In this document: positions 1,505 to 60,245 of the stretch, one piece after another
How the letters are laid out: each line of letters starts with the position of its first letter
How positions within the stretch are numbered: the first letter of the stretch is position 1
IMG/VR virus record: IMGVR_UViG_3300025319_000005
Location: 124,001 to 188,000 of that record
Strand: one strand, 5' to 3'
DNA: 64,000 bases
Position numbers and translations under genes: made by a program
The notes under the pieces: model-generated
What the model was told of the DNA's origin: nothing
The model's input: only the letters and a program-made list of their open reading frames with translations
Database searches by the model: none

Positions 1505-2176
1505 ATGGAATTTGATGAATTGATAAGTAATATTGATTTACATTCTCCGTTCCATAAAATGCTGGAAAAAAATAAATTAACAATTACACAAAATGAATTA
1601 TTAAAATATGTTGATGATAATCATTTTACAATAATACATAAAAGAAGGCAAGAAGGAGTTAGTACTGCGTTATCAGTTTATATTTTGTGGTTATTAATTA
1701 ATAATCCGGGACATTCAATTGCTTTGATATTTTCTCAGACAGAAGAGAGGGAAAAATTCAGACAAATTATCAACATGAATTTAACTTTACTTGAAAAAAT
1801 ATTTAAACTTCATGGCTATGATATGGTTTTAACAGCTAAAAACCATAACATAAATGAAACTATATTTCCAAATGGTTCGCGTATTCATTATTGGTCAAAA
1901 AACAATAAACATGCCGGCAGGGGTCATAGTTTAGATTTTGTTTATATATCAGAAGTAACTCACCAAGATAATTACATGGAACTAATTCAATGCCTTTATC
2001 CATGCGTTGCAATGAGTAAAAAAGGTAGATTTCTAATCACTTCATCAACTATTAGGACACTAAAGGAAGACTTCTTTATGAATGGAGAAGGAATTTCCGA
2101 ATACTGGTGTAATGATTTTTTCGATGGTAAAAGATTTGTAATAGTAGAAAAATACGAATTCAATCATAAAGTGTGA
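1505..2176 (+). CDS. stand-alone terminase-large-subunit ATPase-like protein (degenerate) with RFVIVEKY tag
   Basis: KRRQEGVST resembles terminase Walker A; AGRGHSLDFVYISE resembles Walker B with D>S; no nuclease domain. Confidence 0.6.
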   Translation: MEFDELISNIDLHSPFHKMLEKNKLTITQNELLKYVDDNHFTIIHKRRQEGVSTALSVYILWLLINNPGHSIALIFSQTEEREKFRQIINMNLTLLEKIFKLHGYDMVLTAKNHNINETIFPNGSRIHYWSKNNKHAGRGHSLDFVYISEVTHQDNYMELIQCLYPCVAMSKKGRFLITSSTIRTLKEDFFMNGEGISEYWCNDFFDGKRFVIVEKYEFNHKV

Positions 2177-3192: not shown

Positions 3193-3780
3193 ATGGAAGA
3201 TTCAGAATTTTTTTTAAAAATAGATGCTATGTTAAGTAAAACATTAAAAAACCAAACACTCAAAGAGATGCAAGATGAATTAATAGTTGAAATTACTAAA
3301 AATAAAGAAAACCATAAAGAAAATTTTAATCCTGCATTAGTTTTTAAAAAAATTGGACAAAATATATTTCGAAAATTTCTTGAAACAGAGAGAGGGTATA
3401 CATTACTTTATGATTGTGAAGACAACACTTTTGACCAAACATATATAAAAAATGGGAAAATAGAAGTATTTGAATTAAAAACAGATTACACCCATATGAT
3501 AAATGATGATAATACTGGAGAAATAGCAGATACAAAAAACATAGTAATCGAATTTAAATCCATTGATAAAATGGCTAAATTTTTTGTTACATACTTTCCT
3601 CAAATAAATGAGTTATGGTTAATTAGAACAGAAAAATTAAAGAAGCTTATTGAAGAAGAGAAATATAATTTTCAAACAATAAAAACAGGTGACAATATAA
3701 CTTATTTAACAAATAGAATAGAAATTAAATCAGAATTCAGCATAACAAATGTTTGCAAAGAAGAAATTGTAGTAGTGTAA
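3193..3780 (+). CDS. PD-(D/E)xK nuclease-like protein
   Basis: FD...EVFELKTD and NIVIE pattern; stop overlaps the methyltransferase start (TAATG). Confidence 0.45.
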   Translation: MEDSEFFLKIDAMLSKTLKNQTLKEMQDELIVEITKNKENHKENFNPALVFKKIGQNIFRKFLETERGYTLLYDCEDNTFDQTYIKNGKIEVFELKTDYTHMINDDNTGEIADTKNIVIEFKSIDKMAKFFVTYFPQINELWLIRTEKLKKLIEEEKYNFQTIKTGDNITYLTNRIEIKSEFSITNVCKEEIVVV

Positions 3781-5338: not shown

Positions 5339-7198
5339 ATGAACTTATCAGAATCGTACAAAAATCGCCTTAAATTATTGTCAGGAATTATTTCTGAGAA
5401 TGTTTCTAATATCCAAGAATTAGATATTGAAGACGTATCTATTCCGGCAAGCTACATAAAAGATTCCTTAAATCCACAAATATGGGATGGTGATAAGTTA
5501 AAACCAGAAATAAGAGAACATTTACTAAATATAGTTAATGGATACAAAAAGCATCTTGAATTAAAAATAGAACCTAAAGATGTTAAATTTTTGGGAAGTA
5601 TGGCTAATTTCAACTGGACAGATGCAAGTGATATTGATGTCCATTTATTTTATGACATAAAAAACATCTCTGATAATACAGAACTTACTAAGCAATTACT
5701 TGAAAGTAAAGGTAAAGATTGGAAAGATAATCACGATATAAAAATAAAAGGTTTCAATGTTGAATTATATGCTCAGGATATTAATGACCAATATCACTCT
5801 GGTGGTGTTTATGATTTACTTAATAACGACTGGATTAGTAAGCCAAAAAAAGAAGATGTTAAAGTTGACAAAGAATTAATAAAAAGAAAATCTTCTTCCA
5901 TTGCTACAAGAATAGAACATGTTGAAAAATTGTCTGATAATAATCCAGATAAAGTTTATAAAGAAGCAAAAAAATTAAAAGATAAAATCAAAAAAATGAG
6001 ACAAGCTGGTTTAGATAAAACTGGTGAATTTTCTGCTGAGAATTTAGTTTTTAAATACTTAAGAAACAATGGTTATCTTGATAGGTTAGGAAAAGTTATC
6101 TCAAAATCTTTTGATAAAAATCTATCACTGGATGAAACTAACATTACTGAAGCTAACCACGATATTGATCCAAGACATTTAAGGAAAGTTATTTTTAAAA
6201 GCAAACGCAGGCCAGAAATGATTATTGTCGTTAGTAAGACTTTAGATGGTAGAATTGTTGACATAGAAAATAAATTCAATATAAATTTCCCATTTAAAGT
6301 AGGACAGATTCTAAATAGAAACCATGAAACATGGGCTTGTAATAATCATTATTTTGTAAATGACAAAGATACTTGTCCGGAAGAAAAAGTATTTGGTATT
6401 AGAAAAAGTGATATTCCTCAAGGACATGAATTAAGAATGATGTTTCCGGGTAAATTTAAAAACGAATCAAAAATGGAATTAAATGAAGAAACCAATAAAC
6501 TTTCCTCGAAAGAATCACTTGAAATAAAAAGGGTAGCTAAAAAAGGAAATTTAAATATTGGAAGATATGATATCAACGAGCTTATTATGGGATTTCAAAT
6601 TGAAAAAGAACATGGTACAGTTAATCCAATAACAAATGTTACTAATGATGATGAAGTGAAAACCTTAAAAATTGCTTTAGCTCATCTTAATGAGGTACCG
6701 GACTATTATACAAAACTTAAAAAGTATGTAGAAAATGGGATTTCAGAATCAAAAAAAGTAAAAAAAAAATTAATGAATGAATCAACAGATTTTGAAGAAA
6801 AACAAAAGCATAAATTAATTATAAAAAAATCCGTTGACAATCTTGACGAAAACAAAATTAATCTTATTAAAAAGTTTATAATTTTTTGTTGTAAAGAATT
6901 AAAGATAGATAGTTCGTGCACTGTATTTTTAACAGGAAAAAGGGGTGGTCCAATTACTACTACTGCAAGTTATAATCCAGAAAATGACCATATTTGGATT
7001 TATACAAAAAACAGGAATATGCTGGCAGATCCAATGAGATCGATGGCGCACGAAATAAGACATTTTAAACAAAAATTAGATGGTGTTTTAACTGAAAAGT
7101 CAGGTGAGGATGGAAGCATTCATGAGAATGAAGCAAATTCTTTTAGTGGATGTATGATTAGAAAGTTTGGTAAAAACAATAGAGAAATTTATCAATAA
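5339..7198 (+). CDS. multi-module protein: leader + Pol-beta-type nucleotidyltransferase + unknown module + DUF5661-like + HExxH peptidase
   Basis: GSMANFNW..SDIDVH; MGFQIEKEH..IALAHLNEVPDYY; MAHEIRH; modules separated by LDE/ITE/LNE/ISE/MNE. Confidence 0.7.
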   Translation: MNLSESYKNRLKLLSGIISENVSNIQELDIEDVSIPASYIKDSLNPQIWDGDKLKPEIREHLLNIVNGYKKHLELKIEPKDVKFLGSMANFNWTDASDIDVHLFYDIKNISDNTELTKQLLESKGKDWKDNHDIKIKGFNVELYAQDINDQYHSGGVYDLLNNDWISKPKKEDVKVDKELIKRKSSSIATRIEHVEKLSDNNPDKVYKEAKKLKDKIKKMRQAGLDKTGEFSAENLVFKYLRNNGYLDRLGKVISKSFDKNLSLDETNITEANHDIDPRHLRKVIFKSKRRPEMIIVVSKTLDGRIVDIENKFNINFPFKVGQILNRNHETWACNNHYFVNDKDTCPEEKVFGIRKSDIPQGHELRMMFPGKFKNESKMELNEETNKLSSKESLEIKRVAKKGNLNIGRYDINELIMGFQIEKEHGTVNPITNVTNDDEVKTLKIALAHLNEVPDYYTKLKKYVENGISESKKVKKKLMNESTDFEEKQKHKLIIKKSVDNLDENKINLIKKFIIFCCKELKIDSSCTVFLTGKRGGPITTTASYNPENDHIWIYTKNRNMLADPMRSMAHEIRHFKQKLDGVLTEKSGEDGSIHENEANSFSGCMIRKFGKNNREIYQ

Positions 7199-7199
7199 A

Positions 7200-7552
7200 C
7201 AAGCTCGCGACTTGGTTTATTTATCCTTGTAAAATTTGTTTTGCATTTGCTACTGGTCCCGCAACATTTGCTGTATTATTTGATATTTTTATTTTATTAT
7301 CAAGCTTGTCACATCTAGAATCTAATTCCCTGTGAAGTTCATTGATGTCTTTTCTAAGTTCTTCATCACCAAAATTAATACTTTGATTTACAGTATTATC
7401 TAATTCATCAATCTTTCTACCTAACCTAAAAATTGCAACCACTACCAATGCGATGACAGTAACTACACATAAAGTTGACAGAATTGTTAAAAAAATAATT
7501 GTTGTTGTTTCCATAATTTGTTTCTCCTTTGTTTTTATAAGTCGCGAGCTTG
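7200..7552. repeat. 14-bp perfect inverted repeat pair flanking one gene
   Basis: CAAGCTCGCGACTT at 7200-7213 and AAGTCGCGAGCTTG at 7539-7552. Confidence 0.85.
7221..7514 (-). CDS. single-pass membrane protein with coiled coil
   Basis: hydrophobic N-terminus IIFLTILSTLCVVTVIALVVVAIF; start reassigned to ATG 7514. Confidence 0.7.
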   Translation of the reverse strand: METTTIIFLTILSTLCVVTVIALVVVAIFRLGRKIDELDNTVNQSINFGDEELRKDINELHRELDSRCDKLDNKIKISNNTANVAGPVANAKQILQG

Positions 7553-7636
7553 AGTAAAACAAATTTAATTAGAAAAACTATTAAAGTCAATAGGTAGGTT
7601 TAAATTTTGAAATAATCAAAAGCCTCTATAGCATTA

Positions 7637-8008
7637 CTATGCAGGAGTGTTGTATTTTCCATCATCAAATATTGTTAATTGTTGTATTCTTTGAAGAAAT
7701 ATTACCTTCATTTCTGTTTCTTCGCCTATCCACCATGGTTTTTTTGAGTACATATTTGACATTAATGTGAAGAATTCTTTTTCATTAAGCCCGGTATCTG
7801 TCAAATAAACTCCAGAAGCAATTATTCCACTTATGGTTCTATTGTCTGATTTCAAAACTCTGGCATAGCAAAAAAACCTTTCCCCAATCCTAATGTCAAA
7901 TTCCATTCCAGGATTATACGACTTGTAAGCTGGTCTTATTGTAGAAAATGTGTCACATAAAAGTTTGTTATTCCAATTTTTCGAAAACTCGATTCTTTCG
8001 TATTCCAT
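7637..8008 (-). CDS. hypothetical protein (possible ASCH/PUA-like)
   Basis: FSKNWNNKL...FSTIR pattern. Confidence 0.45.
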   Translation of the reverse strand: MEYERIEFSKNWNNKLLCDTFSTIRPAYKSYNPGMEFDIRIGERFFCYARVLKSDNRTISGIIASGVYLTDTGLNEKEFFTLMSNMYSKKPWWIGEETEMKVIFLQRIQQLTIFDDGKYNTPA

Positions 8009-8024
8009 TTACAATTATGCTTAT

Positions 8025-8216
8025 TTATTTGTAATTTTCCTTCCAACTATCACCTAATTCTTCTTTAATAATATCATCAATAAATGAATCAATTTCATCA
8101 TCTGAAAGGAATTTTTTACCAGCTTTCTTTTGCCGTTTTAATTCCCTATCCAAACCAAGTGAAATTCTTTCTATTAATTTTGATTTGTCTTTTATTAATT
8201 TATTTATTTCGTTCAT
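8025..8216 (-). CDS. hypothetical protein
   Basis: 63-aa ORF in a minus-strand run. Confidence 0.55.
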   Translation of the reverse strand: MNEINKLIKDKSKLIERISLGLDRELKRQKKAGKKFLSDDEIDSFIDDIIKEELGDSWKENYK

Positions 8217-8222
8217 TTCTAT

Positions 8223-9314
8223 TTAATCCTCCAATTTTGACTCCGGTTCTTCTGAATTTCTTTTTTCAATTGCATTTTTAATAGCTTCTATTTGTTTTTT
8301 ACCTAATTCTTCTGGATGGTGACAGATATCTATGCATAAATTTGATAAATCTGTATAATCCAATTGTGCAATGTAATTAATAAATGGCGCAAGGTCATGA
8401 CTTGTAACATCTGCAGTACTTAATAAAGCTCTCCATAATGTAGGTCCAAAAAAGTAATGCCACTGTTCGTGAGAATATTTATCAGCTTCAGCATAAACAT
8501 ATTCTAATTCATATGGAGGTAATTGAGGGATTCCAATTGAAGCAAGGTAATCAACTACTCCTTTTGAAAGTTCGTGAATTAACACTGGAAAATTCATTGC
8601 AGATGCTTTTATGTCCTTTTTTTCAATATCAACTTTATTATGACCCTGAACAACAGGACGACCACCCATCTGCATTGCATCAGCCTGAATCATTTGCCAG
8701 TTCCAATAATTTACAAGTGCAGACAATCTGTTGTATTTTCCTAAAAGCTCCGGATTTATATCATTTAATTTATCAGCAGCAATATAATAAGCTGATGTCC
8801 ATTGATGAATTGCGGCACCATGTACAATAGAATTAAGAATTCTTCTTTTTTCTATTTCAACTTTTAATTCTTCCTTTCTTTCATCACTAATCATTTCTTC
8901 TTCAACGTCACTATCATCAAAATCACCGTCTCCGGCTTCTTCATCTGAATTTTCTAAAAATGCTCTTAAATTAATTGTCTCAGGAACATTATACATTTCC
9001 CGAACAAGGTCTATTGCAATTTCCGTCAATTCTTCTCTGTGAGGAGCTTCAAGTTGTAATAATTCTTGCATTAACATCATTGCATGCATTGGACTTTGTC
9101 CTTCAGCACGTTCAATATATATGCGAGTGCAACGATTAAATTCATCCGCTCCAAGAAATGCCGGATTATAAGAAAAAAATCTATTCTCATTAAATGGAAA
9201 AGTTTTTTCATCAATCATTCTAACTATTCTTGGATTTGGCATATAATTTCCATTTTCCAAATATTCAGCAAACATTAATGTTGCATCTTGTTCTATTTTT
9301 TGTATTTCTGGCAT
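8223..9314 (-). CDS. conserved hypothetical protein
   Basis: 363 aa; KRRILNSIVHGAA, FPVLIHELSKG, FFGPTLW motifs. Confidence 0.65.
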   Translation of the reverse strand: MPEIQKIEQDATLMFAEYLENGNYMPNPRIVRMIDEKTFPFNENRFFSYNPAFLGADEFNRCTRIYIERAEGQSPMHAMMLMQELLQLEAPHREELTEIAIDLVREMYNVPETINLRAFLENSDEEAGDGDFDDSDVEEEMISDERKEELKVEIEKRRILNSIVHGAAIHQWTSAYYIAADKLNDINPELLGKYNRLSALVNYWNWQMIQADAMQMGGRPVVQGHNKVDIEKKDIKASAMNFPVLIHELSKGVVDYLASIGIPQLPPYELEYVYAEADKYSHEQWHYFFGPTLWRALLSTADVTSHDLAPFINYIAQLDYTDLSNLCIDICHHPEELGKKQIEAIKNAIEKRNSEEPESKLED

Positions 9315-10353: not shown

Positions 10354-12561
10354 TCAAAAATCAACAACATTATTATTGTCATTATGTGCAATATTTTGTA
10401 ATTCCTGAACGTTGAAATTAAAATCCAACATTTCGTTTTCTATATGTTTTGCTTGTTGAATTGTTTCTGGCAATTTCAAATCATAACAATTATTATATTC
10501 TTTTATTTCAAAGAATTTTTTAATAAAATCTTTTACTGAGTTAATTATTGTTTCGGTAGCTTTAGCATTATGTTTAGCTTTTAACTGATTAAAAGTATAT
10601 ATTGTTTTTTTTGAACCATCAGAATCAATATTCGAATATTGTATATTTATACTAAGAGTAGCTCTATCCATAGTTTCTAAATCTTCAACAGAATATATTA
10701 CAAAACTTCCTTTTGCAACATTTGCACAATAAGTTTTAACACAATGACTCATTACTGATGATTCTTCATAAAATTTTTCCGGAGTATCAATTAAATTAAA
10801 TTTGATATTATCAAAAATTCCTTCTGTATGTCTGAATTTATCTATGTGAATTTTTAAGTCTTCACTTAATTTTTTATCTGCAATCAACCTAAAAGAAAGA
10901 CTCAAAGAATTATGCATATCAACTAAAGCATCAAAAGTTTTTGATTTTAATATTTCAGTTAATTGAATCTCTACATTTATTAACATAAATATAGTGTCCA
11001 TATACAATTGAAGTATTTTTTCAAAATTAGCATCAGAGGTATGAAAGATTTTTAAAATATGGCAAAAATGTTTGTGGGTTATTTTAAAATGTCCTATTCT
11101 GTTAATGCTTTGATTATACATATTTTGCACACAAACAATAAAGTCGTAAGCATCTTTTATATTATTATTTAATATTATTTTGTCAACTGTTTCAATTTCG
11201 TCAAAAGCAGAATTGTTATGTAAGAATCCATAAAACACTTGAGCAACTTCATCAAAATTTCTTTCTAAAAATAAGTCTACATAAAATTTTCTAAATTGTA
11301 TATTTTTCAATCTCAATTTAATATCTTTATATATTGGAACCCTTGTGTCAACCTGTACTGTCGGATGAGTTGTTATTGAAAATAATAAATCTTTTTTTTG
11401 GGGATGAGCTTTTAATTTTCTCTTTCTTTTTTTCTCTTCTGTTTTTATGTATTTAATTATTTTTGTATGTTTCGAAAATTCAGAAGTTACTTTACTTTTA
11501 AACATAGTTTCCAAAATTGTTTTTGGATTGGTTGGATTTTTCTTTTTTAAGTTTGTCAAAGAACACACAAAAGAAGAATTTGTTAATAAATTAAGAAATT
11601 TATCCGGACCATAAGTAAGAATTAATGTCACGATGGGCTGATAAACTGAAAGTGACAACATTATACATAATCTTCTTTTTAAATATTGTATCCAAATATA
11701 TCTGCTTGTAGACATATTTCCATTATAGTTACTGAGCGATTCTGGCTTATAATGACAATTATTTAAAAAAGATTCTTCACCACAATTAGTTGGAGAGCTA
11801 CTTAAATTTCTAAATAAAGAATTCAAATACATTTCATCACGCTCTTTTTCTAATATTAAATTTATTCTATTAACATCCCTCTGGTCACATTTTGATTCTA
11901 CTAGTTCACAAAATTTTATTAAAGGTTTTATTACCTGTCTTTCAAAAAGTCCTTGCGAAATTACATTTTCATATAATGCATTTAATGTCATATTGTTAAC
12001 TATTGAAGAACAATGTTTAACAAGAAATCTAAACGGCACTGTAATTATTTTTTCCTTAATTTTTATCTTTATGGTATCGCTTTTTTTAGAAAGGTATAAT
12101 GAACGATTACTAATATTCCTAAAAATCAATTTTTTTGTTGTAACAGAGACAAACACTATAGTTGCAAAAGAATATAAAGCATAAAAATTTTCTTTTTCAA
12201 CTACACCAAATCTTTTTGATGTAACATTTCCTTCTATTTCTTTAGAGTAAATTAACTTTACACCGGAAAGGGATTTGTACTCTTTACTGCAACTATTGCA
12301 AATTGTTTTTTGACTTGAAATTATTTTACCGTATCCATTTCTACTTATTGCTTCAAAAGGAATTTCAGTCATTTGACCACAAGTACAATATAAAGCCCAT
12401 CTTTTATTGGAATAATTGTTTTGAAAATGGCTGAATTCTTTTTTTACATTTGTTTCTGGTGTGCTTTCCACGTCATCAAAAGACGGATTAGAAGAATCGT
12501 TATATTGTGGAGTCCTAACTAAATCAAATATAAGAGCAAGATATGGATTTTTTTCTTTCAA
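10354..12561 (-). CDS. PcfJ-like domain protein
   Basis: C-terminal EESSVMSHCVKTY..RATL..QLKAKHN; N-terminal Cys pairs. Confidence 0.65.
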   Translation of the reverse strand: MKEKNPYLALIFDLVRTPQYNDSSNPSFDDVESTPETNVKKEFSHFQNNYSNKRWALYCTCGQMTEIPFEAISRNGYGKIISSQKTICNSCSKEYKSLSGVKLIYSKEIEGNVTSKRFGVVEKENFYALYSFATIVFVSVTTKKLIFRNISNRSLYLSKKSDTIKIKIKEKIITVPFRFLVKHCSSIVNNMTLNALYENVISQGLFERQVIKPLIKFCELVESKCDQRDVNRINLILEKERDEMYLNSLFRNLSSSPTNCGEESFLNNCHYKPESLSNYNGNMSTSRYIWIQYLKRRLCIMLSLSVYQPIVTLILTYGPDKFLNLLTNSSFVCSLTNLKKKNPTNPKTILETMFKSKVTSEFSKHTKIIKYIKTEEKKRKRKLKAHPQKKDLLFSITTHPTVQVDTRVPIYKDIKLRLKNIQFRKFYVDLFLERNFDEVAQVFYGFLHNNSAFDEIETVDKIILNNNIKDAYDFIVCVQNMYNQSINRIGHFKITHKHFCHILKIFHTSDANFEKILQLYMDTIFMLINVEIQLTEILKSKTFDALVDMHNSLSLSFRLIADKKLSEDLKIHIDKFRHTEGIFDNIKFNLIDTPEKFYEESSVMSHCVKTYCANVAKGSFVIYSVEDLETMDRATLSINIQYSNIDSDGSKKTIYTFNQLKAKHNAKATETIINSVKDFIKKFFEIKEYNNCYDLKLPETIQQAKHIENEMLDFNFNVQELQNIAHNDNNNVVDF

Positions 12562-15149: not shown

Positions 15150-15296
15150 ATTCTTGTGATATTCAATCACATATTTTAATTTTTTCAAAATATATCATGA
15201 ATCTTTTAAAATTTCATTCGTGAATAAAAATATATTACTTTCAGTATGTTTGCCTTAAAAGTTTTTTATTGCATATTTATAGTAAACATACTTAAA

Positions 15297-15992
15297 ATGA
15301 AAACAGAAACAGAAAAAACAGAAGAGAAACAAAAAATCAAAGAATTGGTTGATAAGGGTTTAAAAAATAAAGAAATTGGGAAAATATTAGGAATGAAATA
15401 TCGTACAGTTTGTTTTAAGTTAAGAGAATATAAATTAATTAGATATTCTAAACCGCAAATTTCTCAAGAAAAAATAGATGAAATGATTAGATTATATAAT
15501 GAAGGATATAATTGTACCGAAATTTGTGAAAAAATAAATATAAGTAAAATTACAATTTCATTTATACTAAAGGAGAACGGAATCAAAATAGTTAAACGAA
15601 GTGCTGATAGTAAACCAGAATTAAGATTATTAAGAGGTGAAAAATGTATAATTTGCGATAGAAACCTTGGACCATATGTTACAATATGTAGCACTTGTGT
15701 TTCTCAAGTTAGAAGGTATAAAATAAAGAAAAAAATGTTTGATTTTAAAGGTGGCAAATGTGAAGATTGTGGAGATGATAGTTTATGTGTGGATATTTAT
15801 GATTTTCATCATTTAGATCCAGATGAAAAGGATTTTAATTTATCAAAAGTTTTAATAGACGGAAAATCTTGGGATGATATAGAAAAAGAATTAAAAAAAT
15901 GCGCCTTACTCTGTTCTAATTGTCACAGAATTAGACATTCTGTTGAAAGAAAAAGTGAAAAATTTTGGAAATATATAAAATTAATTTCTTAA
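15297..15992 (+). CDS. HNH homing endonuclease with N-terminal HTH repeats
   Basis: CEDCG..YDFHHLDPDEKDF..KCALLCSNCHRIRH; start reassigned to 15297 after TATTTA 15274-15279. Confidence 0.85.
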   Translation: MKTETEKTEEKQKIKELVDKGLKNKEIGKILGMKYRTVCFKLREYKLIRYSKPQISQEKIDEMIRLYNEGYNCTEICEKINISKITISFILKENGIKIVKRSADSKPELRLLRGEKCIICDRNLGPYVTICSTCVSQVRRYKIKKKMFDFKGGKCEDCGDDSLCVDIYDFHHLDPDEKDFNLSKVLIDGKSWDDIEKELKKCALLCSNCHRIRHSVERKSEKFWKYIKLIS

Positions 15993-16028: not shown

Positions 16029-16033
16029 CACTG

Positions 16034-16150
16034 TGTTGATGGGGGGGATCGAACCAACCCGACTCATTTGCTTTCAGGAAATTGCTCTCACTTACTCCTT
16101 GCGAAGTAAAGGATTTGTCTTGCGAAAAACCACCACTGAGCTACATCAAC
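16034..16150 (-). tRNA. atypical tRNA-Phe(GAA)-like gene with ~41-nt two-hairpin D-loop insertion
   Basis: acceptor GTTGATG/CATCAAC, D stem GCTC/GAGC, loop CTGAAAG, T loop TTCGATC; insertion forms two GCAA-capped hairpins. Confidence 0.7.
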
Positions 16151-16173
16151 ATATTATTAAAGAACTAATTTTG

Positions 16174-16250
16174 TGTCGATTAGAGACTACAAGTCCTCTC
16201 TTTTCTGGTTGTTCACACCAGCACTTTACGTGTACATAAGTTAAATCGAC
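16174..16250 (-). ncRNA. non-canonical tRNA-like RNA, GAA anticodon (copy 1)
   Basis: GTCGATT/AATCGAC, ACTT/AAGT, CTGGT-GTGAACA-ACCAG, T-like loop CTTGTAG; 77 nt. Confidence 0.75.
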
Positions 16251-16255
16251 ATATG

Positions 16256-16332
16256 TGTTGGTGAGAGACTACAAATCCGCTCTTATTCGGCTGTTCACAC
16301 CGATACTTTATATGTGTATAAGTTACACCAAC
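16256..16332 (-). ncRNA. non-canonical tRNA-like RNA, GAA anticodon (copy 2)
   Basis: GTTGGTG/CACCAAC, ACTT/AAGT, TCGGT-GTGAACA-GCCGA, T-like loop TTTGTAG; compensatory changes versus copy 1. Confidence 0.75.
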
Positions 16333-16469: not shown

Positions 16470-17009
16470 ATGACTACAGAGGAAAAAAAATTAAGAATAG
16501 CTATAAGAAAATCATTAATGGAAATGGAAAACGTTTCTGAAAGCGATATTTTAACAAGAGCTGGAGTTAACTGGCAAGAGATGAAGCCTAAATTTTTAAA
16601 AACAGTTAAATGTCTTGTTTCAAAAATAGATGACGATAAATATAACGATGCAGAAGATTTAATAGGTAAAGCTATTGGTATGCTTAAAATTTGGAAAGCA
16701 AAAATGAAAAAAGGAATAGGAATGGTTGATAGAACTTCGAATACTGAGACGTTGGATGAAATTGATATTACGGAAACTTTTGGTGGGAAATATGCTCTAG
16801 GAACTGGATATAAAAAAGATGAAATTGGCGATAAAAAATATCAAGGAAAACTTATTGATTATATTCTTTATAATCAAGGAAGAAACACAGACCAAAGAGA
16901 GCCGACTGATAGAAAAATGTATTGCGGATATGATTTAGAACAATTATCTAATAAGGATTTACAAAAAATAAAGGATAACATGGAACATCCAAGAGGAAGA
17001 TACTGGTAA
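16470..17009 (+). CDS. putative virion-associated protein with leader motif
   Basis: KLRIAIRKSLME; TATTTA at 16433-16438. Confidence 0.6.
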   Translation: MTTEEKKLRIAIRKSLMEMENVSESDILTRAGVNWQEMKPKFLKTVKCLVSKIDDDKYNDAEDLIGKAIGMLKIWKAKMKKGIGMVDRTSNTETLDEIDITETFGGKYALGTGYKKDEIGDKKYQGKLIDYILYNQGRNTDQREPTDRKMYCGYDLEQLSNKDLQKIKDNMEHPRGRYW

Positions 17010-17824: not shown

Positions 17825-18310
17825 TTATTTTCCTGGTTTTCCAGATTTTATCCACTCATCTCTAAGTTTCTCATTTTCTATTCTATTCCAAACTGATTTT
17901 TGAATTGCCTGAGATGCTTTTGTTCTAGAATTTGCAGATGCTTCATCTGGATAACGGACACGCCATTGATAAACAAGCTCCTTTGCTACTCCTAAACCTC
18001 TGTATTTCTTATCAACAACAAGAGTATTGCCAAAATGATAGCTGGCAATTATTTTATCACCATCATATACAACAGCACCATCTTCATTGAATTTCGCTGA
18101 ATATTTCCCTTTTAAAAATGGTTCTAATTTATCATCTTTTAATGTGGTAAGTTCACTTGGTTTTAAAAATTTCGCATTAGCGTTTGTTGTTATTGATGGT
18201 TTTCCTAAAAATTGGTCTTTTGTTAAATCATATACAGATGAAAACTTAGCTTCATTAATTCCTGCCAATTCACGCATTCTTTTAATTTCTTCTGTGAGAT
18301 TTTTTTTCAT
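17825..18310 (-). CDS. GNAT acetyltransferase-like protein with shared leader
   Basis: MKKNLTEEIKRMRELAGINE; VVDKKYRGLGVAKEL acetyl-CoA motif. Confidence 0.7.
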   Translation of the reverse strand: MKKNLTEEIKRMRELAGINEAKFSSVYDLTKDQFLGKPSITTNANAKFLKPSELTTLKDDKLEPFLKGKYSAKFNEDGAVVYDGDKIIASYHFGNTLVVDKKYRGLGVAKELVYQWRVRYPDEASANSRTKASQAIQKSVWNRIENEKLRDEWIKSGKPGK

Positions 18311-25329: not shown

Positions 25330-26364
25330 TTATCTAATTTCAACATTAAGACGCTCAATTGAGGTGAATTTTATATTTTCTTGGATTTCATTTATTTCTG
25401 TATTTGTTAAAGTGCGATCATTTGATTGAAAAACTATTCTATAACACTTAGATTGTTTACCTGTTTTTGGGTGAGCAAATTCATCTATTAATGAAACATT
25501 TTCTATTAAATCGCCTCCATTTTCTCTCACAATTTCACAAAAATTATTATGAGCGAAATTAGTATCTGCCCAAAATGCCAAATCTCTGGATATTGGTGGA
25601 TAACTTGAGTATTCCTTAAATTTAACTACATCTCCAGAAATAAATTGATTTATAAATCTTTCATCAGACGACCAAAAGTAACGTATGTCTGGTATTTCAA
25701 ATAAGAGGATAGACAATCTTTCCAAACCTAATCCAAAAGCAAATGCAGCTTTATTTTCTAAACCACAATTTTCCATAATTTTAGGTTGAACAACCCCTGC
25801 ACCAAGAACCTCTAACCATTTTCCCTGAAACATAACTTCAACTTCAAAAGATGGATGTGTAAAAGGAAAATAATCTTCATTGAAGCGGTATTCACAATTT
25901 GGAAAAAGAACATCAATAAGACCTTTTAATGTTTTTTTAAGTTCTTCTTCTGCGTTTTTTCCATCTTCAATTACACATACACCTTCCATTTGGTGAAAAA
26001 CCGGATAATGAGAGCTGTCAATATCATCTTTCCGATACACATCACCTGTAACTAAAAATTTTGTATGACCAGCAGTTAATAATTCATTTTGGTGAGCCGA
26101 TGTATGGGTTCGTAATATATGATTCTCATCAAAATAATAAGTATCACTCAATGAACGTGCAGGATGATCTTTTGGAATAAGTAGTTTATCAAAACAATTT
26201 TCAGTTGTAACCTTTGGATTTAAATCATCAAATTTTTTATATTCATCTCCAAAGTAATCATAGATTTTTCTTTTAATAATTTCTAAAGGATGATTTTTTT
26301 GATTGTGTAAATTTCTGCCAATTTTAGCTTGGATTCCGGGGGTAATGTTTGATTTAAATTCCAT
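25330..26364 (-). CDS. pheS: monomeric organellar (FARS2)-type phenylalanyl-tRNA synthetase
   Basis: IGRNLHNQKNHPL; LRTHTSAHQ; GDVYRKDDIDSSHYPVFHQMEG; GLGLERL..IPDIR; fused C-terminal FDX-ACB (RDLAFW..HPKTGKQSKCYRI); start reassigned to 26364. Confidence 0.93.
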   Translation of the reverse strand: MEFKSNITPGIQAKIGRNLHNQKNHPLEIIKRKIYDYFGDEYKKFDDLNPKVTTENCFDKLLIPKDHPARSLSDTYYFDENHILRTHTSAHQNELLTAGHTKFLVTGDVYRKDDIDSSHYPVFHQMEGVCVIEDGKNAEEELKKTLKGLIDVLFPNCEYRFNEDYFPFTHPSFEVEVMFQGKWLEVLGAGVVQPKIMENCGLENKAAFAFGLGLERLSILLFEIPDIRYFWSSDERFINQFISGDVVKFKEYSSYPPISRDLAFWADTNFAHNNFCEIVRENGGDLIENVSLIDEFAHPKTGKQSKCYRIVFQSNDRTLTNTEINEIQENIKFTSIERLNVEIR

Positions 26365-26451
26365 AAAATAATTGTTTAATTGTTTTTTGTACAAATTTAT
26401 AAAAATAATATTAATTAACAATATATTAAACGGAAATCTTTTTAGAATGTT

Positions 26452-27120
26452 TTAATCAAATTTCATATTCATTAGTTCTAACAATTCCTTGTCCATACTG
26501 TCAGAATATCCTGAGCTAAAAATGGCAAATTCCGTTATTAATTTTAAATATTTTGGAGACGGTTCTCCATTTGCCTTGCCCTTAGTCTGAATTGCCATTC
26601 CGGTATGAGTATCAATCTCAATTGTTACATGCGACTCATTCTTTTCGTCTCGTAAAGAAACTATTAACGAATTGCCTTGTTTCACTTTGGTAGTATATGT
26701 TCCTACGCAGTTTCTCATTGTTTCGCCTTCTGTTGCTAAATCTTCCACGTCCAAAAGAACAAAATAATGTATTCCATCACGGCATCTATATAATATTTTA
26801 TCATCCTCTTCTTTTTCTTTATTTTTAATAGTTTCATCAAATTTCATGTCGTCATGCCATACTTGTGCCAGTACATAAGCCTCCAAAAAAGATAAAGATA
26901 AGATATTTGGCTTTTCTTTTTTTGCCCAATCTATTATAAATAAAAATCCATCAAGATTATTCAGAAGAGTATCATCTTTCTTTACTTGACCTCCAATCCA
27001 AATATTAAATTTGTCAGTTCCGGATAAACGTCCGATTTCACTTATTTTTCTAACAAGCTCCTCATCAATTTTGAAGTTATCTAAGAGATATTTTTCTTTC
27101 TTTGTTAATTGCTCTGCCAT
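26452..27120 (-). CDS. PcfJ-like domain protein
   Basis: EGETMRNCVGTY..SHVTIEI..QTKGKAN. Confidence 0.7.
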   Translation of the reverse strand: MAEQLTKKEKYLLDNFKIDEELVRKISEIGRLSGTDKFNIWIGGQVKKDDTLLNNLDGFLFIIDWAKKEKPNILSLSFLEAYVLAQVWHDDMKFDETIKNKEKEEDDKILYRCRDGIHYFVLLDVEDLATEGETMRNCVGTYTTKVKQGNSLIVSLRDEKNESHVTIEIDTHTGMAIQTKGKANGEPSPKYLKLITEFAIFSSGYSDSMDKELLELMNMKFD

Positions 27121-27123
27121 AAT

Positions 27124-27840
27124 CTATTTCTTAATGTAATTCAAAATTTGCTTAGCACAATCCTCAACATTAAATTTTTGTGTATCAACAATAATCTCTG
27201 GGTTTAATGGAATTTCATAAGGTGCTGTATCGTGCACTCCTGTAAAATCCTTTATCTCCCCACTCCTCGCCTTTGCATACAACCCTTTAACGTCTCTTTG
27301 TTCACAAATACTCAAAGGTGTATTGACATATATTTCAGTAAAATCCTTACTTATACTCCTTACATAATCTCTTGCTTCAGCATATGGAGAAATAAGACTT
27401 ACGACAGGTATTATACCTTGACTTTGTAAATAAACTGCCATTTTTCCAACATCTTGATTGTGTCTTATTCTTGCAGCTTTATCAAAGCCATAATTTTTAA
27501 ATATTTCTCTGATTTCATCTCCATCCAAAAGCATGGCGGCATGACCACCTTCTTTCAGACGAGTTAAAACTTCTTTTGCTATCGTTGTTTTTCCAGAACA
27601 TGAGAGCCCGGTAAAAAATAACATGCTCGTTCTATATTTTTTCTTTGTAAGTTTATCCCACACAATATCAAACCAATAATATGTAAGTATTTTTACAATA
27701 TTTTCCACAAGGCCAAGCATTATGGAGAGTTTTATGTTTCCAGTAAGAAGAAAAGAAACAACAAATGTTACAACAAAAGAATAAATTCTGTAAATTACAG
27801 ATTTTGTCATGTGTTTTATGTTAATTATTTTCCTTAGCAT
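27124..27840 (-). CDS. cysC: adenylylsulfate kinase with N-terminal DUF2061-like membrane domain
   Basis: FTGLSCSGKTT, LLDGDEIR, ICEQRDVKGLYAKARSGEIKDFTG. Confidence 0.92.
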   Translation of the reverse strand: MLRKIINIKHMTKSVIYRIYSFVVTFVVSFLLTGNIKLSIMLGLVENIVKILTYYWFDIVWDKLTKKKYRTSMLFFTGLSCSGKTTIAKEVLTRLKEGGHAAMLLDGDEIREIFKNYGFDKAARIRHNQDVGKMAVYLQSQGIIPVVSLISPYAEARDYVRSISKDFTEIYVNTPLSICEQRDVKGLYAKARSGEIKDFTGVHDTAPYEIPLNPEIIVDTQKFNVEDCAKQILNYIKK

Positions 27841-37540: not shown

Positions 37541-38458
37541 ATGCGTAAATTCAACATTATCGGAGGCATGCCTAGATGTGGCACAACTTTAGCTGGACAA
37601 ATTTTAAATTCTAATCCGAATTTTCATGTGACACCAACTTCTTCAATTTTGGATTCATTAAAGAATATAAGAAGCACATTTAGTCACAACCCAACTTGGA
37701 AGGCTCAAGATAGATTAAAGCTTATGCCAAATATTAGAGCTTCTATGAAGGGGTTTTTAAATGGATTTTTTGAAAATGAAAATGTTGTGTTTGACAAAAA
37801 CAGAGGTTGGTCAAATAATATTTCTTTATTAGATGATGTTCTTGGAAATAATGACACAAAAATAATCTGGTTTTATAGAAATCCTGTTGAAATTATTTCT
37901 TCCATAGAAAGCCAACACAACAAGACAATACTTTTAGAAAACACTGATGAAGCTACTATTCCAGGAATGTTTATGTCGCTCGACCGGCGCATAGGAACGT
38001 ATACAAATGAAGATGGATTAGTTGGACACCCAGTTGCCACATTGAAAGACGCGATTGAGATGGGATATCTTTCAAGAATTTTATTTGTAAAATACTATGA
38101 TTTAACTAATAACACACAATTTGTTATGAACGCTATTCATCAATTTATAGGAGAAGATTTCTATGAATATGATTTAAAAAATGTTAAACAAACAACATAT
38201 GAATTTGACGGGACTTATAATTATAAATTTCCACACACAATAAAAGAAGGAGAGATAAAATGGAAAAAAGCAGATATGACTCTTCCTATGAAATATATAC
38301 AAGCAATAAATGAAAGATTTTCCACTCTTAATAAATTAATTTTTGAAGGTGATGTATCTGAATTTGCTGGAGAAGAATTTTCTTCACATCAATTAAATAT
38401 TGTTATGCCACCAACACAACAAAATTCGGTTATAGAACAAAATCCTTTTCAAATATAA
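37541..38458 (+). CDS. sulfotransferase family protein
   Basis: 5'PSB GMPRCGTTL; 3'PB FYRNPVEIISS. Confidence 0.85.
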   Translation: MRKFNIIGGMPRCGTTLAGQILNSNPNFHVTPTSSILDSLKNIRSTFSHNPTWKAQDRLKLMPNIRASMKGFLNGFFENENVVFDKNRGWSNNISLLDDVLGNNDTKIIWFYRNPVEIISSIESQHNKTILLENTDEATIPGMFMSLDRRIGTYTNEDGLVGHPVATLKDAIEMGYLSRILFVKYYDLTNNTQFVMNAIHQFIGEDFYEYDLKNVKQTTYEFDGTYNYKFPHTIKEGEIKWKKADMTLPMKYIQAINERFSTLNKLIFEGDVSEFAGEEFSSHQLNIVMPPTQQNSVIEQNPFQI

Positions 38459-38461: not shown

Positions 38462-40573
38462 TTACAAATTATCATTATTATTTTGTAAATTCCTTATGAA
38501 TTCAATAGGATTAACTCCTCCCAAATCTTCAATACGTTGAATGTTTTGAATGAAATTATCTAAATTTAATTCAGATTCATTTCCTCTCGAAGTAGAAAGT
38601 CTTAAATCTGCAAGCTCTTTATAAGAAATTTCTTTTTCTTGTAAAAATTCCATTATATTAGTTTTAAATCGGTCAGAACCTTGTCTATTGCAAGTTGCTT
38701 TAACTTGGTCAAATTCTAATTTTCCATATTTATCAGCTTTCAATCCAAGCATAAATTTTTCAGGTTCCCCTCCCTCTCTTTTTTCGTCAATATCTTCTAC
38801 TATGCATAACACATATTGAGAATTAGAAACTCTATTTACATATGAGCCGGCACAATTTTTCATGTCCTGCGAAGCCTTAAGGAGTAATTCTGGTGTTCTT
38901 ATCAATCTTACTTTTAAGTTTTTTTCATATTCTTCAAGAATTTTATATTGTGAAACAAAACTTACAAATTCTTTATTTTTAGCATCATTAGAAAGTAAAT
39001 TAAAATGGTCAATTAATTTATTATGATATTCTTCTAATTCCTCTATTTTTTTTATTTTGTGGAATTCTTTATTTGAATCCCAGTTGAGCGCTCTAATCAT
39101 TCTAAGACTATCGTCGTAACTCGTCAAATCAAAACTCTTCAATAAAGTATAATCTAAAGGTATTTTTGACAATTCTTCCTCATTTACTTCTTGAATTTGT
39201 TCTGTGTCTTTAATTAAAAATCTTTCTCTGGCATATTTCAATTCAGTATTAGTTTTATTAAAAGAAAATAGTTTTTTTCTTTCTAAAGAACTTAAGGCCA
39301 ACGAAATTATTTGATTAATTTTAAGCATATTCATATCTGCTCTAAATTCTAAGCTATACCATAAATTAACTAATAAATTAACATTATTTTTTTTAACAAG
39401 TTCTATAAGTTCATTAAATGAAATGAATTTAGTATATTTTATTAAAATTTTATAATCAGAAAATCTTTCTATTATATTAAAAACATATGGGGAAACACTT
39501 TTTTCTTTTATGTCTTCACGCAAAAATCTTTCACCATCTTTATTTTTTCCTGTTTGATTTTCATTGTTGTTAAATCTGGAAGCATCAAACTTAAACGTTA
39601 CCTCTCTTCCGCTTTCAGCCTTAAATACATAACCCATTTTTTCAGAATCATAAGCATCTAATTCTTTGCTTATTTCTTCGTTTTTATAATTTACAAGATA
39701 ATTGAAAATTTTAAGAGGAGATGTTGCTCCATTATCTGATAACTCTTGTGGATTAGGAAGTTTGCAATCATTCATCATATCAAAAAGAAATATAGTTCCT
39801 TTTGTTAATGCTATTGTAGATAAGTTTGAATAGCAAATTATTCCAAAAAATATTGAGGCTACTTTTATAATAATGTCCAGTCCTGATTTACCGACCATTT
39901 GACTCATTAATTCATCTATTATATTTATGTTCTGTGAATCGGATACAAAATTAGCCATTCTATTTATAAATAAATGAACATCAAATAATCGTTCAGTTGT
40001 CTTTACTTCTCCATAAAGAAAAAACTCTAAAACAATTGACATCACCCTATCAAGATTAAATTCAATTTCTTCCTTGCTGAAATCTTTAAAATAAAGTTTT
40101 TTGGCAGTTTTATCAAATTTTATCCAAGATAAACTTTCATTTAATTCTAAAGAAGGTTCATCTTTTGAAATGACGAAAGGCATTGACCTTTTTTTATCAA
40201 AATTTATTTTTGCTATAAATCTTTGTTTTATTAATTTAACATCATTTTCATCTTCATAAAAACAATATGACTCAAAAAATTGTTTTTCACATTCTTGAAT
40301 AATTCCAGCCGTTTCCTTAGTTGAATAATCTGTATCGCATTTTTCGCATTTAAGAGAAAATCTGGCCATACTATTCTCATCGAATAAACCTGTAATATCA
40401 CCTATATCAGCTCCTTCTTTTATACTTACTTTCATTTCTGAGGCTACGACCTTTCTATCTTGTTTGATTAAATGGCCACATTTACAAAAAAATAAATCTG
40501 TATCATTTTTTGCGTCATCATAATGAAAAGTAAACTTATTTAATATTTCTTCTTCTTTGATTAATTCTCTCAT
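38462..40573 (-). CDS. PcfJ-like domain protein (paralog of 10354-12561)
   Basis: ASQDMKNCAGSY..FDQVKATCN; N-terminal CKCG/CEKC. Confidence 0.65.
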   Translation of the reverse strand: MRELIKEEEILNKFTFHYDDAKNDTDLFFCKCGHLIKQDRKVVASEMKVSIKEGADIGDITGLFDENSMARFSLKCEKCDTDYSTKETAGIIQECEKQFFESYCFYEDENDVKLIKQRFIAKINFDKKRSMPFVISKDEPSLELNESLSWIKFDKTAKKLYFKDFSKEEIEFNLDRVMSIVLEFFLYGEVKTTERLFDVHLFINRMANFVSDSQNINIIDELMSQMVGKSGLDIIIKVASIFFGIICYSNLSTIALTKGTIFLFDMMNDCKLPNPQELSDNGATSPLKIFNYLVNYKNEEISKELDAYDSEKMGYVFKAESGREVTFKFDASRFNNNENQTGKNKDGERFLREDIKEKSVSPYVFNIIERFSDYKILIKYTKFISFNELIELVKKNNVNLLVNLWYSLEFRADMNMLKINQIISLALSSLERKKLFSFNKTNTELKYARERFLIKDTEQIQEVNEEELSKIPLDYTLLKSFDLTSYDDSLRMIRALNWDSNKEFHKIKKIEELEEYHNKLIDHFNLLSNDAKNKEFVSFVSQYKILEEYEKNLKVRLIRTPELLLKASQDMKNCAGSYVNRVSNSQYVLCIVEDIDEKREGGEPEKFMLGLKADKYGKLEFDQVKATCNRQGSDRFKTNIMEFLQEKEISYKELADLRLSTSRGNESELNLDNFIQNIQRIEDLGGVNPIEFIRNLQNNNDNL

Positions 40574-48854: not shown

Positions 48855-48933
48855 TACCTTCAATAGGATTCGAACCTACATTTTCAGCTCCGTTACACTT
48901 ATTGAGTCCGTAGCTCAATGTGGCTATAAAGGC
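48855..48933 (-). ncRNA. D-arm-less tRNA-Arg(ACG)-like RNA
   Basis: acceptor GCCTTTA/TGAAGGT, ATTGAG-CTACGGA-CTCAAT, canonical T arm GTAGG-TTCGAAT-CCTAT; no D arm, 21-nt extra region. Confidence 0.65.
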
Positions 48934-48934: not shown

Positions 48935-49621
48935 TTATATTAATTCATATCGTTTTGCCCACTTTCTCACCGCAACATCACTAACTCCAAATTTTCTACC
49001 AAGTGCACAATATGAATTATTTTCTATCATTTCTTTTAATTCTTCTTTAGAGGGTCTGTTTTTTACTTTTCTAAAATTTAATCTAGGTACATATTTTCTC
49101 GTTGTTTTTTTATTTGTTTTATTTTTTTTTGCATTTTTTCTGTCTACGCCAATTTTACCACGGCAATGAGTTTCTAATGTGAAATTGCAGTTTGGACATA
49201 AAAATCTTAAGTTTTCTAATCTATTATCATTATTTATTCCGTTTTCGTGGTCAATAATTAAACTAATTTTTTTACCTCTCCATATTTCTCCTTGTCCACA
49301 TTCTTTACATTCATATTCTATCATGTTATTATCTCGTATTCTTTTTTTTAAACAAGCCCTTGCAACAGAACTGTTTTCACAAAAAATTTCTTCATCACTT
49401 TTCCTTAATAATCTGTCTTCATTAAACATTTTTTTAGCAAAATCACTACGGTTTAAAAAATGAGAAGTATCTATTGACCATTTATTTAAATTTGTTTTAA
49501 GTATTTTATAAGATGAAGAAGAATCGCTTCTTCCAGATTTTACTATAACATCTCTAAATGTGATGCTTTCAGATACTAATTTTTGTAATTCTTCTTTTGT
49601 ATATTCTTTATGTTCTTTCAT
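48935..49621 (-). CDS. HNH homing endonuclease
   Basis: CKECG..IIDHENGINNDNRLENLRFLCPNC; C-terminal HTH. Confidence 0.9.
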   Translation of the reverse strand: MKEHKEYTKEELQKLVSESITFRDVIVKSGRSDSSSSYKILKTNLNKWSIDTSHFLNRSDFAKKMFNEDRLLRKSDEEIFCENSSVARACLKKRIRDNNMIEYECKECGQGEIWRGKKISLIIDHENGINNDNRLENLRFLCPNCNFTLETHCRGKIGVDRKNAKKNKTNKKTTRKYVPRLNFRKVKNRPSKEELKEMIENNSYCALGRKFGVSDVAVRKWAKRYELI

Positions 49622-58694: not shown

Positions 58695-58698
58695 ATAG

Positions 58699-58785
58699 TG
58701 TACCCAGAAAGATTCGAACTTTCAACGGCCTTTCGGCTCCCCACAGGGTAAAAACCTGTTGCTCTACCAATTGAGCCATGGGTAC
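58699..58785 (-). tRNA. tRNA with Lys(TTT) anticodon and 19-nt variable arm
   Basis: ACAGG-TTTTTAC-CCTGT; variable region GGGGAGCCGAAAGGCCGTT. Confidence 0.85.
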
Positions 58786-59474: not shown

Positions 59475-60245
59475 TTAAAATACAAATTTTAAGACTTTAA
59501 TATTATTTACTTTTTCACTATATCCAAAATTTCTAATTTCATCATGTATTTCTATGTGACAATTTGCACAAACCATAATACATTTATCAACTTCTACTTT
59601 TAATCTTTCAAAACCATAAGATTTGCCACCAATAGTAAAATCTTTTTCACTTGGATTTGTATGATGAAATTGTAAAACTGATGTTGATTTATTATATCCA
59701 CAACATTCACATTTCCATCCTTTATATTCAATTAATCTAATTTTACTTCTTTTTCTCCAATCTATAACAGCCTGACTTTTGGTTTTAGTTTTTTGTCTTT
59801 TTTTATTTGTTTTAATCAAATCATCAGAAATGTAATTTCTAATTGTTGTCCTATCTACCTTAAAATAAGCGGCTGTTTTTCTTAAAGACTTACTTTCTAT
59901 ATAAAAATTAACAACTTCTATTTCAATAAGTTCTTTTTTCTTAAATGTACCACTTGATTTATTTAATCCATACAAATTACATATTTTAATTAACTTATCT
60001 TCTCCAATGTCCAAAATTGACCTTATTTCGTCATAGCTTTTCAATTCTCTTCTGTAAGCAATTATTTTGTTTATAACTTCATCAGTTATTCCAATTAAAA
60101 AACTGTTTCTTACTCCGCCAAGTCCAACATTATTTATGTGATAAGACACAGTGCTTTTTGAACACTTTAATTGTTCAACTATTTCTTTTATAGTTGAGCC
60201 TTTTTCTCTTAAAGAGATAATTTTATTTTTCAAACCTTTATCCAT
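59475..60245 (-). CDS. HNH homing endonuclease with HTH repeats (paralog of 15297-15992)
   Basis: CECCG..LQFHHTNPSEKDF..KCIMVCANCHIEIH; start reassigned to 60245. Confidence 0.87.
   Translation of the reverse strand: MDKGLKNKIISLREKGSTIKEIVEQLKCSKSTVSYHINNVGLGGVRNSFLIGITDEVINKIIAYRRELKSYDEIRSILDIGEDKLIKICNLYGLNKSSGTFKKKELIEIEVVNFYIESKSLRKTAAYFKVDRTTIRNYISDDLIKTNKKRQKTKTKSQAVIDWRKRSKIRLIEYKGWKCECCGYNKSTSVLQFHHTNPSEKDFTIGGKSYGFERLKVEVDKCIMVCANCHIEIHDEIRNFGYSEKVNNIKVLKFVF

Follow-up and report, generated by a model that had tools for sequence, protein, structure and literature searches.

What are the two adjacent RNAs that a stretch of viral DNA appears to encode, each shaped like a tRNA and carrying a GAA anticodon, but lacking the usual D- and T-loop nucleotides? 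The stretch analysed here, which we call the window, is 64,000 nucleotides long and comprises positions 124001-188000 of a 212,632-bp IMG/VR contig. A first-pass annotation, made from the letters of the window, had drawn attention to the pair. We find that both RNAs belong to a cassette that is structured, covarying, conserved in related genomes and linked to a gene for a phenylalanyl-tRNA synthetase (PheRS). The probable explanation, in our judgement, is that the cassette is a three-gene operon of divergent tRNA-Phe(GAA) genes, carried by a huge phage and charged by the phage's own PheRS. The features concerned are these.

Putative promoter, 16410-16378, minus strand: TTTG (16410-16407, at -33), a 21-nt spacer and the -7 box TATCTTTG (16385-16378).
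Unit A, 16332-16256, minus strand: 77-nt divergent tRNA-Phe-like gene of type Y; anticodon GAA at 16296-16294, loop GUGAACA, A73 at 16256, CCA not encoded.
Unit B, 16250-16174, minus strand: 77-nt divergent tRNA-Phe-like gene of type Y; anticodon GAA at 16214-16212, loop GUGAACA, A73 at 16174, CCA not encoded.
Element Z, 16150-16034, minus strand: 117-nt expanded tRNA-Phe-like gene downstream of unit B; start UAGCUCAGUGGU and T loop UUCGAUC both canonical, anticodon loop CUGAAAG with GAA at 16075-16073, A73 at 16034.
Predicted intrinsic terminator, 16029-15997, minus strand: a strong terminator, with a 14-bp hairpin followed by a U-run.
Single-chain mitochondrial-type PheRS, 25330-26421, minus strand: catalytic core and FDX-ACB anticodon-binding domain.

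Units A and B are as the first-pass annotation had described them: two 77-nt cloverleaves, 5 nt apart, with a GAA anticodon and A73. Both are on the minus strand. In each, a 7-bp acceptor stem is followed by U8-A9, a 4-bp D stem (ACUU/AAGU) and a 5-bp anticodon stem. The 7-nt anticodon loop, GUGAACA, places U33 before G34-A35-A36, and a T-like arm and A73 follow. The best drawing gives this arm 2 bp, a single bulged base, a further 3 bp and a loop of 7 nt. It replaces an earlier version in which unit A had a bulged G and a C-U mismatch, and it fits types X and Y, described below. The annotation's reading that the D-loop GG and the TTCR motif are absent is also correct. The D loops of A and B (AUACACAUAUA and AUGUACACGUA, respectively) have no G18G19 and the T loops (UUUGUAG and CUUGUAG) have no UUCR (U54-U55-C56-R57).

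The two copies differ at 19 of 77 positions. Twelve of these differences make up six compensatory pairs, of which the acceptor stem has three, the anticodon stem two and a D-loop extension one. Two more are U-G/U-A exchanges that keep the pairing, the other five fall at unpaired positions, and no pair is disrupted. Compensation had been claimed for the acceptor stems (GTCGATT/AATCGAC in one copy and GTTGGTG/CACCAAC in the other) and for the anticodon stems (CTGGT/ACCAG and TCGGT/GCCGA) around an invariant loop; the three acceptor pairs and two anticodon pairs bear this out. In A and B together, 42 of 42 stem cells pair in the cloverleaf, compared with 24-50% when the 3' partners are slid. The 3-bp extension of the D hairpin in type Y units covaries in the window twins but is not universal, so it was left out of the model. 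Folded as single sequences, the units are only slightly more stable than shuffles (z = -1.5 and -2.1), and for unit A the MFE structure is not the cloverleaf. Because single-sequence folding is only modestly above shuffles, the case rests on comparative evidence.

In contigs that encode a PheRS 66-81% identical to that of the window, gene order is kept and the cassette occupies the same gap. Cassettes hold one to four GAA genes of several shapes. Type Y resembles units A and B; type X has a near-canonical T loop, UUYRAUY; type W is a 72-73-nt form; and type Z is the expanded form. We aligned 15 distinct short units from 8 genomes over 79 columns. One architecture, with a T arm of 2 bp, a bulge, 3 bp and a 7-nt loop, fits X and Y; W units follow the same stem plan in a shifted register. 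Among the 15 units, 95.5% of 313 stem cells pair, compared with 72.6% in shuffles and 36-48% in slid alignments. Both sides change in 16 of 21 pairs, a level that 0 of 500 shuffles reach. Covariation in homologs, without which the original proposal could hardly have survived, is present. It supports a four-helix 7/4/5/5 cloverleaf in which the T stem carries an extra bulged base. Twenty-one G-U cells in the 15 units would become A-C mismatches if read on the plus strand, and this fixes the strand as minus. The promoter, the terminator, U33, A73 and, where encoded, CCA agree with that strand.

Ten positions are invariant in 15 of 15 short units: G1, C72, A73, U8, A9, A14, U33, G34, A35 and A36. 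Of these, U8, A14 and U33 are also conserved in canonical elongator tRNAs. Position 37 is C, not a purine, in 13 of the 15, including A and B, and is A in some members. Within a genome, short units have homogenised bodies: those of A and B are 79% identical and those of the L041 twins 100%. The acceptor stem of unit A shares 93% identity with those of L033_e1, L040_e1 and L041_e2. Distinct acceptor stems persist across genomes, and therefore the twins are not simple redundant copies.

Are these tRNA genes at all? The first-pass annotation had supposed that tRNA finders would miss them, and both programs tried are silent. ARAGORN, in standard and mitochondrial modes, makes no call for A, B or Z. 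The Rfam tRNA model RF00005 has no match at the cassette, even at E<=10, and other Rfam models give only chance-level matches there, to terminator look-alikes. In relatives, ARAGORN calls the counterparts in L035, L046 and L051 tRNA-Phe(GAA), and ACCA is encoded in many of these genomes. A covariance model built from the short units, R1, scores the family at 66-87 bits, Z elements at 31-41 bits and the ordinary tRNAs of the window at no more than 37 bits. Unit A scores 73.7 bits, unit B 73.4 bits and the Z of the window 30.9 bits; scanning the window with R1 found no further copies. The covariance-model scores, the ARAGORN calls in relatives and the encoded ACCA argue for divergent tRNA-Phe genes, and not for an unrelated RNA. 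Judged from sequence, then, the family is conserved and covarying, and some of its counterparts in relatives can be recognised as tRNA-Phe genes.

Simpler searches were less productive. An exact-pattern scan of viral contigs for the loop and T arm returned 24 loci; the source contig is real and the other 23 are chance matches in coding sequence. Searches with single flanking proteins returned the source contig only. Scanning viral contigs for the Z signature found none beyond this clade, and one match in prokaryotic genomes, in a Scytonema MAG, was discarded as a chance match. Elsewhere in the window, positions 48855-48933 (minus strand) give a weak Rfam tRNA match (34.6 bits) on which ARAGORN is silent. 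It has a canonical T arm and an odd D region, and may be another atypical tRNA.

The first-pass annotation spoke of twins. Both are present, but a third GAA element, Z, and the terminator beyond it had been overlooked. The D loop of Z contains two tandem GCAA-capped hairpins, inserted after G18-G19-U20 at position 20/20a, and its T stem carries a 2-nt bulge. Z has both G18G19 and UUCR, and its position 37 is a purine, A37. In six aligned Z elements, 96% of cells are paired and 12 pairs covary; the only systematic non-pair is 31-39. U33, G34, A35 and A36 (columns 77-80) and A73 are invariant in the same six, and G1-C72 occurs in 6 of 6. GAA is also read in the Z of L051 and L056. Five genomes carry the extra hairpin at D-loop position 20/20a, whereas Z in L047, L051 and L056 has its extra hairpins in the T-stem bulge. 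At low threshold, ARAGORN proposes an intron-containing tRNA-Leu(AAG) for Z. We rejected this, as the GAA form with the D-loop insertion covaries in six Z elements.

Two further observations concern individual Z elements. That of L031 (16645-16743) has an anticodon loop of 8 nt, UGUGAAAA, and not 7. The L040 contig, from a public metagenome, ends in an Illumina adapter (AGATCGGAAGAGC... at 3197-3242) that truncates its Z. Expansion is also seen in the tRNA-Lys(UUU) of the window (58698-58785, minus strand), which is 88 nt long and carries a GAAA-capped hairpin, GCC-GAAA-GGC, in the variable region. Since a GNRA hairpin also expands this tRNA-Lys, the insertion in Z need not concern PheRS. Hence, tRNA expansion may be a general habit of this phage and not specific to PheRS.

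A, B and Z lie between TTTG-N21-TATCTTTG and the intrinsic terminator. The promoter that the first-pass annotation had assigned to the units is present at 16410-16378, with its -7 box about 45 nt upstream of unit A. The TATCTTTG box is kept upstream of the cassette in L031, L033, L035, L041, L040, L047, L050 and L056. The same TTTG-N-TATCTTTG motif, as a near-identical pair, lies upstream of conventional tRNA clusters at 53002 and 61368 (both minus strand), and the second of these precedes the cluster containing tRNA-Phe 61012-61089. The bipartite motif is enriched in non-coding DNA, which makes up 23% of the window and holds 7 of the 14 occurrences. We take TTTG/TAnnTTTG to be a Bacteroidota promoter type. 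A sigma-70-like site at 16364-16335 was rejected; it is not conserved in relatives and the start would fall inside unit A. At the other end, a hairpin and T-run after the cassette are visible in L033, L035, L041, L046, L051 and L056.

The genes flanking the cassette are on the opposite strand. They encode an HTH-HNH homing-endonuclease-like protein (15246-15992) and a protein of unknown function (16470-17009). HTH/HNH homing-endonuclease-like ORFs stand beside tRNA-gene regions at 15246-15992 (plus strand), 48935-49621 (minus strand) and 59475-60287 (minus strand). The one adjoining the cassette is missing from that position in L035.

Which enzyme might charge such RNAs? An organellar-type PheRS of the phage had been invoked, and its gene is found at 25330-26421. 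Database gene calls begin at an internal Met and give 344 aa (25330-26364). The protein has the class II Phe core (PF01409, residues 35-260) and a C-terminal FDX-ACB domain (PF03147, residues 272-363). It scores 378 bits against TIGR00469 (pheS_mito), past the equivalog cutoff of 258.35. Its alignment with human mitochondrial PheRS (E=1e-103) spans both domains; bacterial PheRS alpha subunits match only the core. The closest named PheRS is that of Tupanvirus, at 60% identity. In a protein search of deposited phage genomes, 0 of 50,697 records had a single-chain PheRS. The NCBIfam model 'PheS-related mystery ligase SrmL' matches the protein at 251 bits, below its cutoff of 300. SrmL is a bacterial family of similar layout and may bear on the origin of this PheRS. 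Three PcfJ-like proteins are encoded in the window (10354-12561, 26452-27120 and 38462-40573, all minus strand). One of the genes is directly upstream of PheRS, an arrangement conserved in relatives.

In the window, PheRS and the cassette are about 9 kb apart. A GAA cassette lies 4-9 kb downstream of PheRS in L031, L033, L035, L046, L047, L050, L051, L056 and L061. Two of these, L056 and L061, are distant, with PheRS identities of 54% and 50%, respectively. The co-occurrence that the first-pass annotation had put forward as a check therefore extends down to 50% PheRS identity, but no cassette was found within 10 kb of PheRS in L053 (62% PheRS identity) or in giant-virus loci. Most linked genomes are syntenic relatives, so the linkage is suggestive and not independent proof.

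Other translation genes occur in these neighbourhoods. L047 encodes a CCA-adding-type nucleotidyltransferase (7184-8407; PF01743) three genes upstream of PheRS; a Pfam scan of 50 window ORFs found no CCA-adding nucleotidyltransferase. Near the PheRS of two distant relatives there are CUA-anticodon tRNAs, labelled 'Pyl' by ARAGORN (L053, 19471-19558; L063, 1547-1637). These are possible amber suppressors and could hint at stop-codon recoding in L053 and L063.

The closest named PheRS belongs to Tupanvirus and some PheRS-related loci are giant-virus MAGs; therefore, we tested the host domain. A giant virus of eukaryotes was rejected as the source on four grounds: tRNA-His encodes G-1 opposite C73, the bacterial form; terminators are of the hairpin and T-run kind; the TAnnTTTG box is present; and there are phage-type proteins. 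These features indicate a huge tailed phage of bacteria as the source, although the protein evidence is weak (matches to a T4-type terminase, a gp23-like protein and a phage metallopeptidase). The host is probably one of the Bacteroidota. Contigs as long as 503 kb encode the same PheRS protein, and the cassette region is 100% identical in contigs from other samples (SRR3500544 and JGI 3300025146). The window holds 16-17 conventional tRNAs, including the tRNA-Phe at 61012-61089 with the loop UUGAAGA. Phe accounts for 5.3% of codons, an unremarkable demand. Two side observations concern the gene content of the phage. A 223-aa ORF at 1505-2176 (plus strand) matches no more of the T4-type large terminase than its N-terminal domain, and the gene for that protein may be split or interrupted. 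The window also encodes an APS (adenylyl-sulfate) kinase (27124-27840, minus strand) and a sulfotransferase (37541-38458, plus strand), which suggests a phage-encoded sulfation pathway.

From this arrangement we infer how A, B and Z might be transcribed, processed, charged and delivered to the ribosome. Leftward transcription from the TTTG/TAnnTTTG promoter would yield one precursor, ending at the intrinsic terminator. Processing of the precursor would release two 77-nt tRNAs and the expanded tRNA of 117 nt. CCA, which these three genes lack but many relatives encode, would then be added by a nucleotidyltransferase. Finally, the phage's single-chain PheRS would charge all three, giving a route for Phe that is largely independent of host PheRS.

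Recognition by that enzyme can be argued from identity elements. The universal set for Phe is G34, A35, A36 and A73, to which E. coli PheRS adds U20 and U59 at the corner of the L (PMC9976931). The monomeric mitochondrial PheRS relies on a restricted group, G1-C72, A73, C74 and G34, and is too small to reach nucleotide 20 (PMC9976931). The universal set is present in 15 of 15 short units, as is G1-C72. For the variable-pocket nucleotides, U20 and U59, the corner of A and B has no reliable numbering, and in Z a hairpin occupies 20/20a. Thus A, B and Z retain G1-C72, A73 and G34, nucleotides reportedly read by a monomeric mitochondrial-type PheRS, together with A35 and A36, with the D/T corner seemingly lost in A and B and masked by the hairpin at position 20 in Z. 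With those nucleotides kept and the corner lost or masked, the phage PheRS is the likely charging enzyme, and host PheRS probably charges A, B and Z poorly. The original suggestion that the RNAs are substrates of the phage PheRS gains from the identity positions and from the linkage, support that is comparative in kind.

Charging need not mean ordinary decoding. A purine at position 37 is near-universal in tRNAs and matters for reading UUN codons, and the T-stem bulge falls in a region contacted by EF-Tu. C37, in 13 of 15 short units, and the bulged T stem therefore count against decoding. There is a conventional tRNA-Phe in the genome, so the cassette is not needed simply to supply a Phe decoder. 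Together with the ordinary use of Phe codons, this means that decoding may not be the role, or not the sole role, of the cassette.

A bolder form of the same idea is possible but doubtful. The cassette and its enzyme might make up a private, effectively orthogonal Phe system: a mitochondrial-type PheRS, without the bacterial editing subunit, and tRNA-Phe species that host PheRS cannot charge and that are perhaps nuclease-resistant. If so, Phe decoding could be kept, or altered, after phage or host had shut down host tRNA-Phe or PheRS. Phe could also be diverted to a non-ribosomal acceptor, and this would be a natural orthogonal aaRS/tRNA pair inside a bacterium.

Charging of a divergent tRNA-Phe operon by the phage PheRS has to be weighed against other readings. 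One is defence evasion, in which aberrant tRNA-Phe molecules survive, or soak up, a host nuclease directed at tRNA-Phe. With an altered body and an altered anticodon loop (G32 or C32 with C37), they would be poor substrates or good decoys, and the phage PheRS would merely be the enzyme able to charge altered tRNAs. The loops fit such an account, being GUGAACA in the window and CUGAACA in most relatives, as against UUGAAGA in the conventional phage tRNA-Phe. Changes in the anticodon loop have been proposed to spare phage tRNAs from anticodon nucleases (PMC10264068), and SAMD9 is an animal antiviral anticodon nuclease specific for tRNA-Phe (PMC12042756); defence evasion is therefore a serious rival. 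The several structural classes, and the distinct acceptor stems in each genome, would likewise suit diversification against a recognising enzyme. However, our literature search found no report of a bacterial tRNA-Phe-specific nuclease. Evasion also overlaps with charging by the phage PheRS, with which it is partly compatible, and does not exclude it. As an explanation of the cassette, we consider it rather unlikely. Use outside the ribosome is, we think, improbable. Here the charged RNAs would be Phe donors for an aminoacyl-tRNA-dependent transferase, or the RNAs would be protein-binding regulatory tRNA mimics. Such a role would make sense of C37 and the bulged T stem, which are unfavourable for decoding and for EF-Tu binding. 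The conserved nucleotides suit charging and not the L-shaped corner, a conventional tRNA-Phe is already available, and the window has weak GNAT-like ORFs at 17825-18310 and 57419-58432. Yet we detected no aminoacyl-tRNA transferase family in the neighbours, and the GNAT-like neighbour is not conserved beside the cassette in relatives. Z retains a canonical T loop and G18G19, and some members have A37. The full 5-bp anticodon stems and U33 are kept as well, and would be superfluous for a mere acceptor-end donor.

The remaining readings deny the cassette a tRNA function on the minus strand. If duplicated tRNA-Phe genes had drifted after loss of function, one would expect them to be missed by tRNA finders, to have degenerate D and T loops and to vary in copy number, here from 1 to 4. 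But covariation keeps every helix across genomes whose PheRS proteins are 50-81% identical, and this effectively refutes decay. The identity nucleotides are invariant and the promoter and terminator conserved, so that pseudogenes are highly improbable. Negligible probability attaches to a plus-strand feature, either a tRNA-Glu-like (UUC) RNA or a 68-codon ORF at 16033-16239. The stems are self-complementary on both strands, the ORF exists mechanically and ARAGORN, at low threshold, proposes a mitochondrial-type tRNA-Glu. Nevertheless, the plus-strand reading turns the 21 G-U cells into A-C mismatches, places G at loop position 33 and folds less stably; the minus strand is where the promoter, the terminator, A73 and encoded CCA all lie.

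Charging by the phage PheRS thus remains our preferred reading. Phage tRNAs are usually counted with tools tuned to canonical forms, and this conserved tRNA-Phe family escapes them; it bears on how accurately tRNAs are counted in viral metagenomics. Outside this setting, the type of PheRS linked to the cassette is associated with organelles and giant viruses. Were the pairing functional, a virus would bring both halves of a charging system, with recognition rules unlike those of its host. That would bear on how huge phages take over translation, on conflict between phage and host over tRNA, and on the search for orthogonal aaRS/tRNA pairs. In the literature we found no description of a conserved, finder-invisible, remodelled tRNA-Phe family coupled to a mitochondrial-type PheRS.

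How does the cassette compare with known systems? According to the passages searched in Al-Shayeb et al. (2020, PMC7162821), huge phages carry sets of tRNAs and aminoacyl-tRNA synthetases and may charge 'their own tRNA variants', the largest clade infects Bacteroidetes, and tRNAs were found with the bacterial model of tRNAscan-SE; those passages mention neither a PheRS nor aberrant tRNAs. Like the phages described there, this one has many tRNAs and its own synthetase. Unlike in those passages, the tRNAs here escape ARAGORN and Rfam, and the synthetase is of the mitochondrial single-chain type. The FARS2 system is similar in that the phage PheRS is of predicted monomeric type, with a core and an FDX-ACB domain. 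Units A and B resemble mitochondrial tRNA-Phe in having G1-C72, A73, A9 and GAA without the G18G19/UUCR corner. In contrast to that system, ours belongs to a phage of bacteria, the arms are full length and the T-stem bulge is conserved; position 37 is usually C and one member is expanded by GNRA-capped hairpins. The 'bizarre' mitochondrial tRNAs of metazoans have likewise lost D- and T-loop nucleotides and kept the acceptor and anticodon arms. They differ from the cassette, which is phage-encoded, involves no organelle and has arms neither shortened nor missing.

The phage tRNAs proposed to evade nucleases (van den Berg et al. 2023, PMC10264068) share with ours a deviating anticodon loop around an unchanged anticodon. 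Those tRNAs have a canonical body and use host synthetases, whereas the RNAs studied here are remodelled throughout and occur together with a dedicated synthetase of foreign type. Papers on T5 tRNA-Lys/PARIS and on retron evasion give, in the parts available to us, further cases of nuclease-evading phage tRNAs. Finally, tRNA mimics, such as the bacterial YrlA Y RNAs and viral tRNA-like structures, are also tRNA-shaped and uncalled by standard tRNA models. Unlike these, A, B and Z match no Rfam family; their cloverleaf is complete, they possess an anticodon loop and the Phe identity set, and in relatives they grade into recognisable tRNA-Phe genes.
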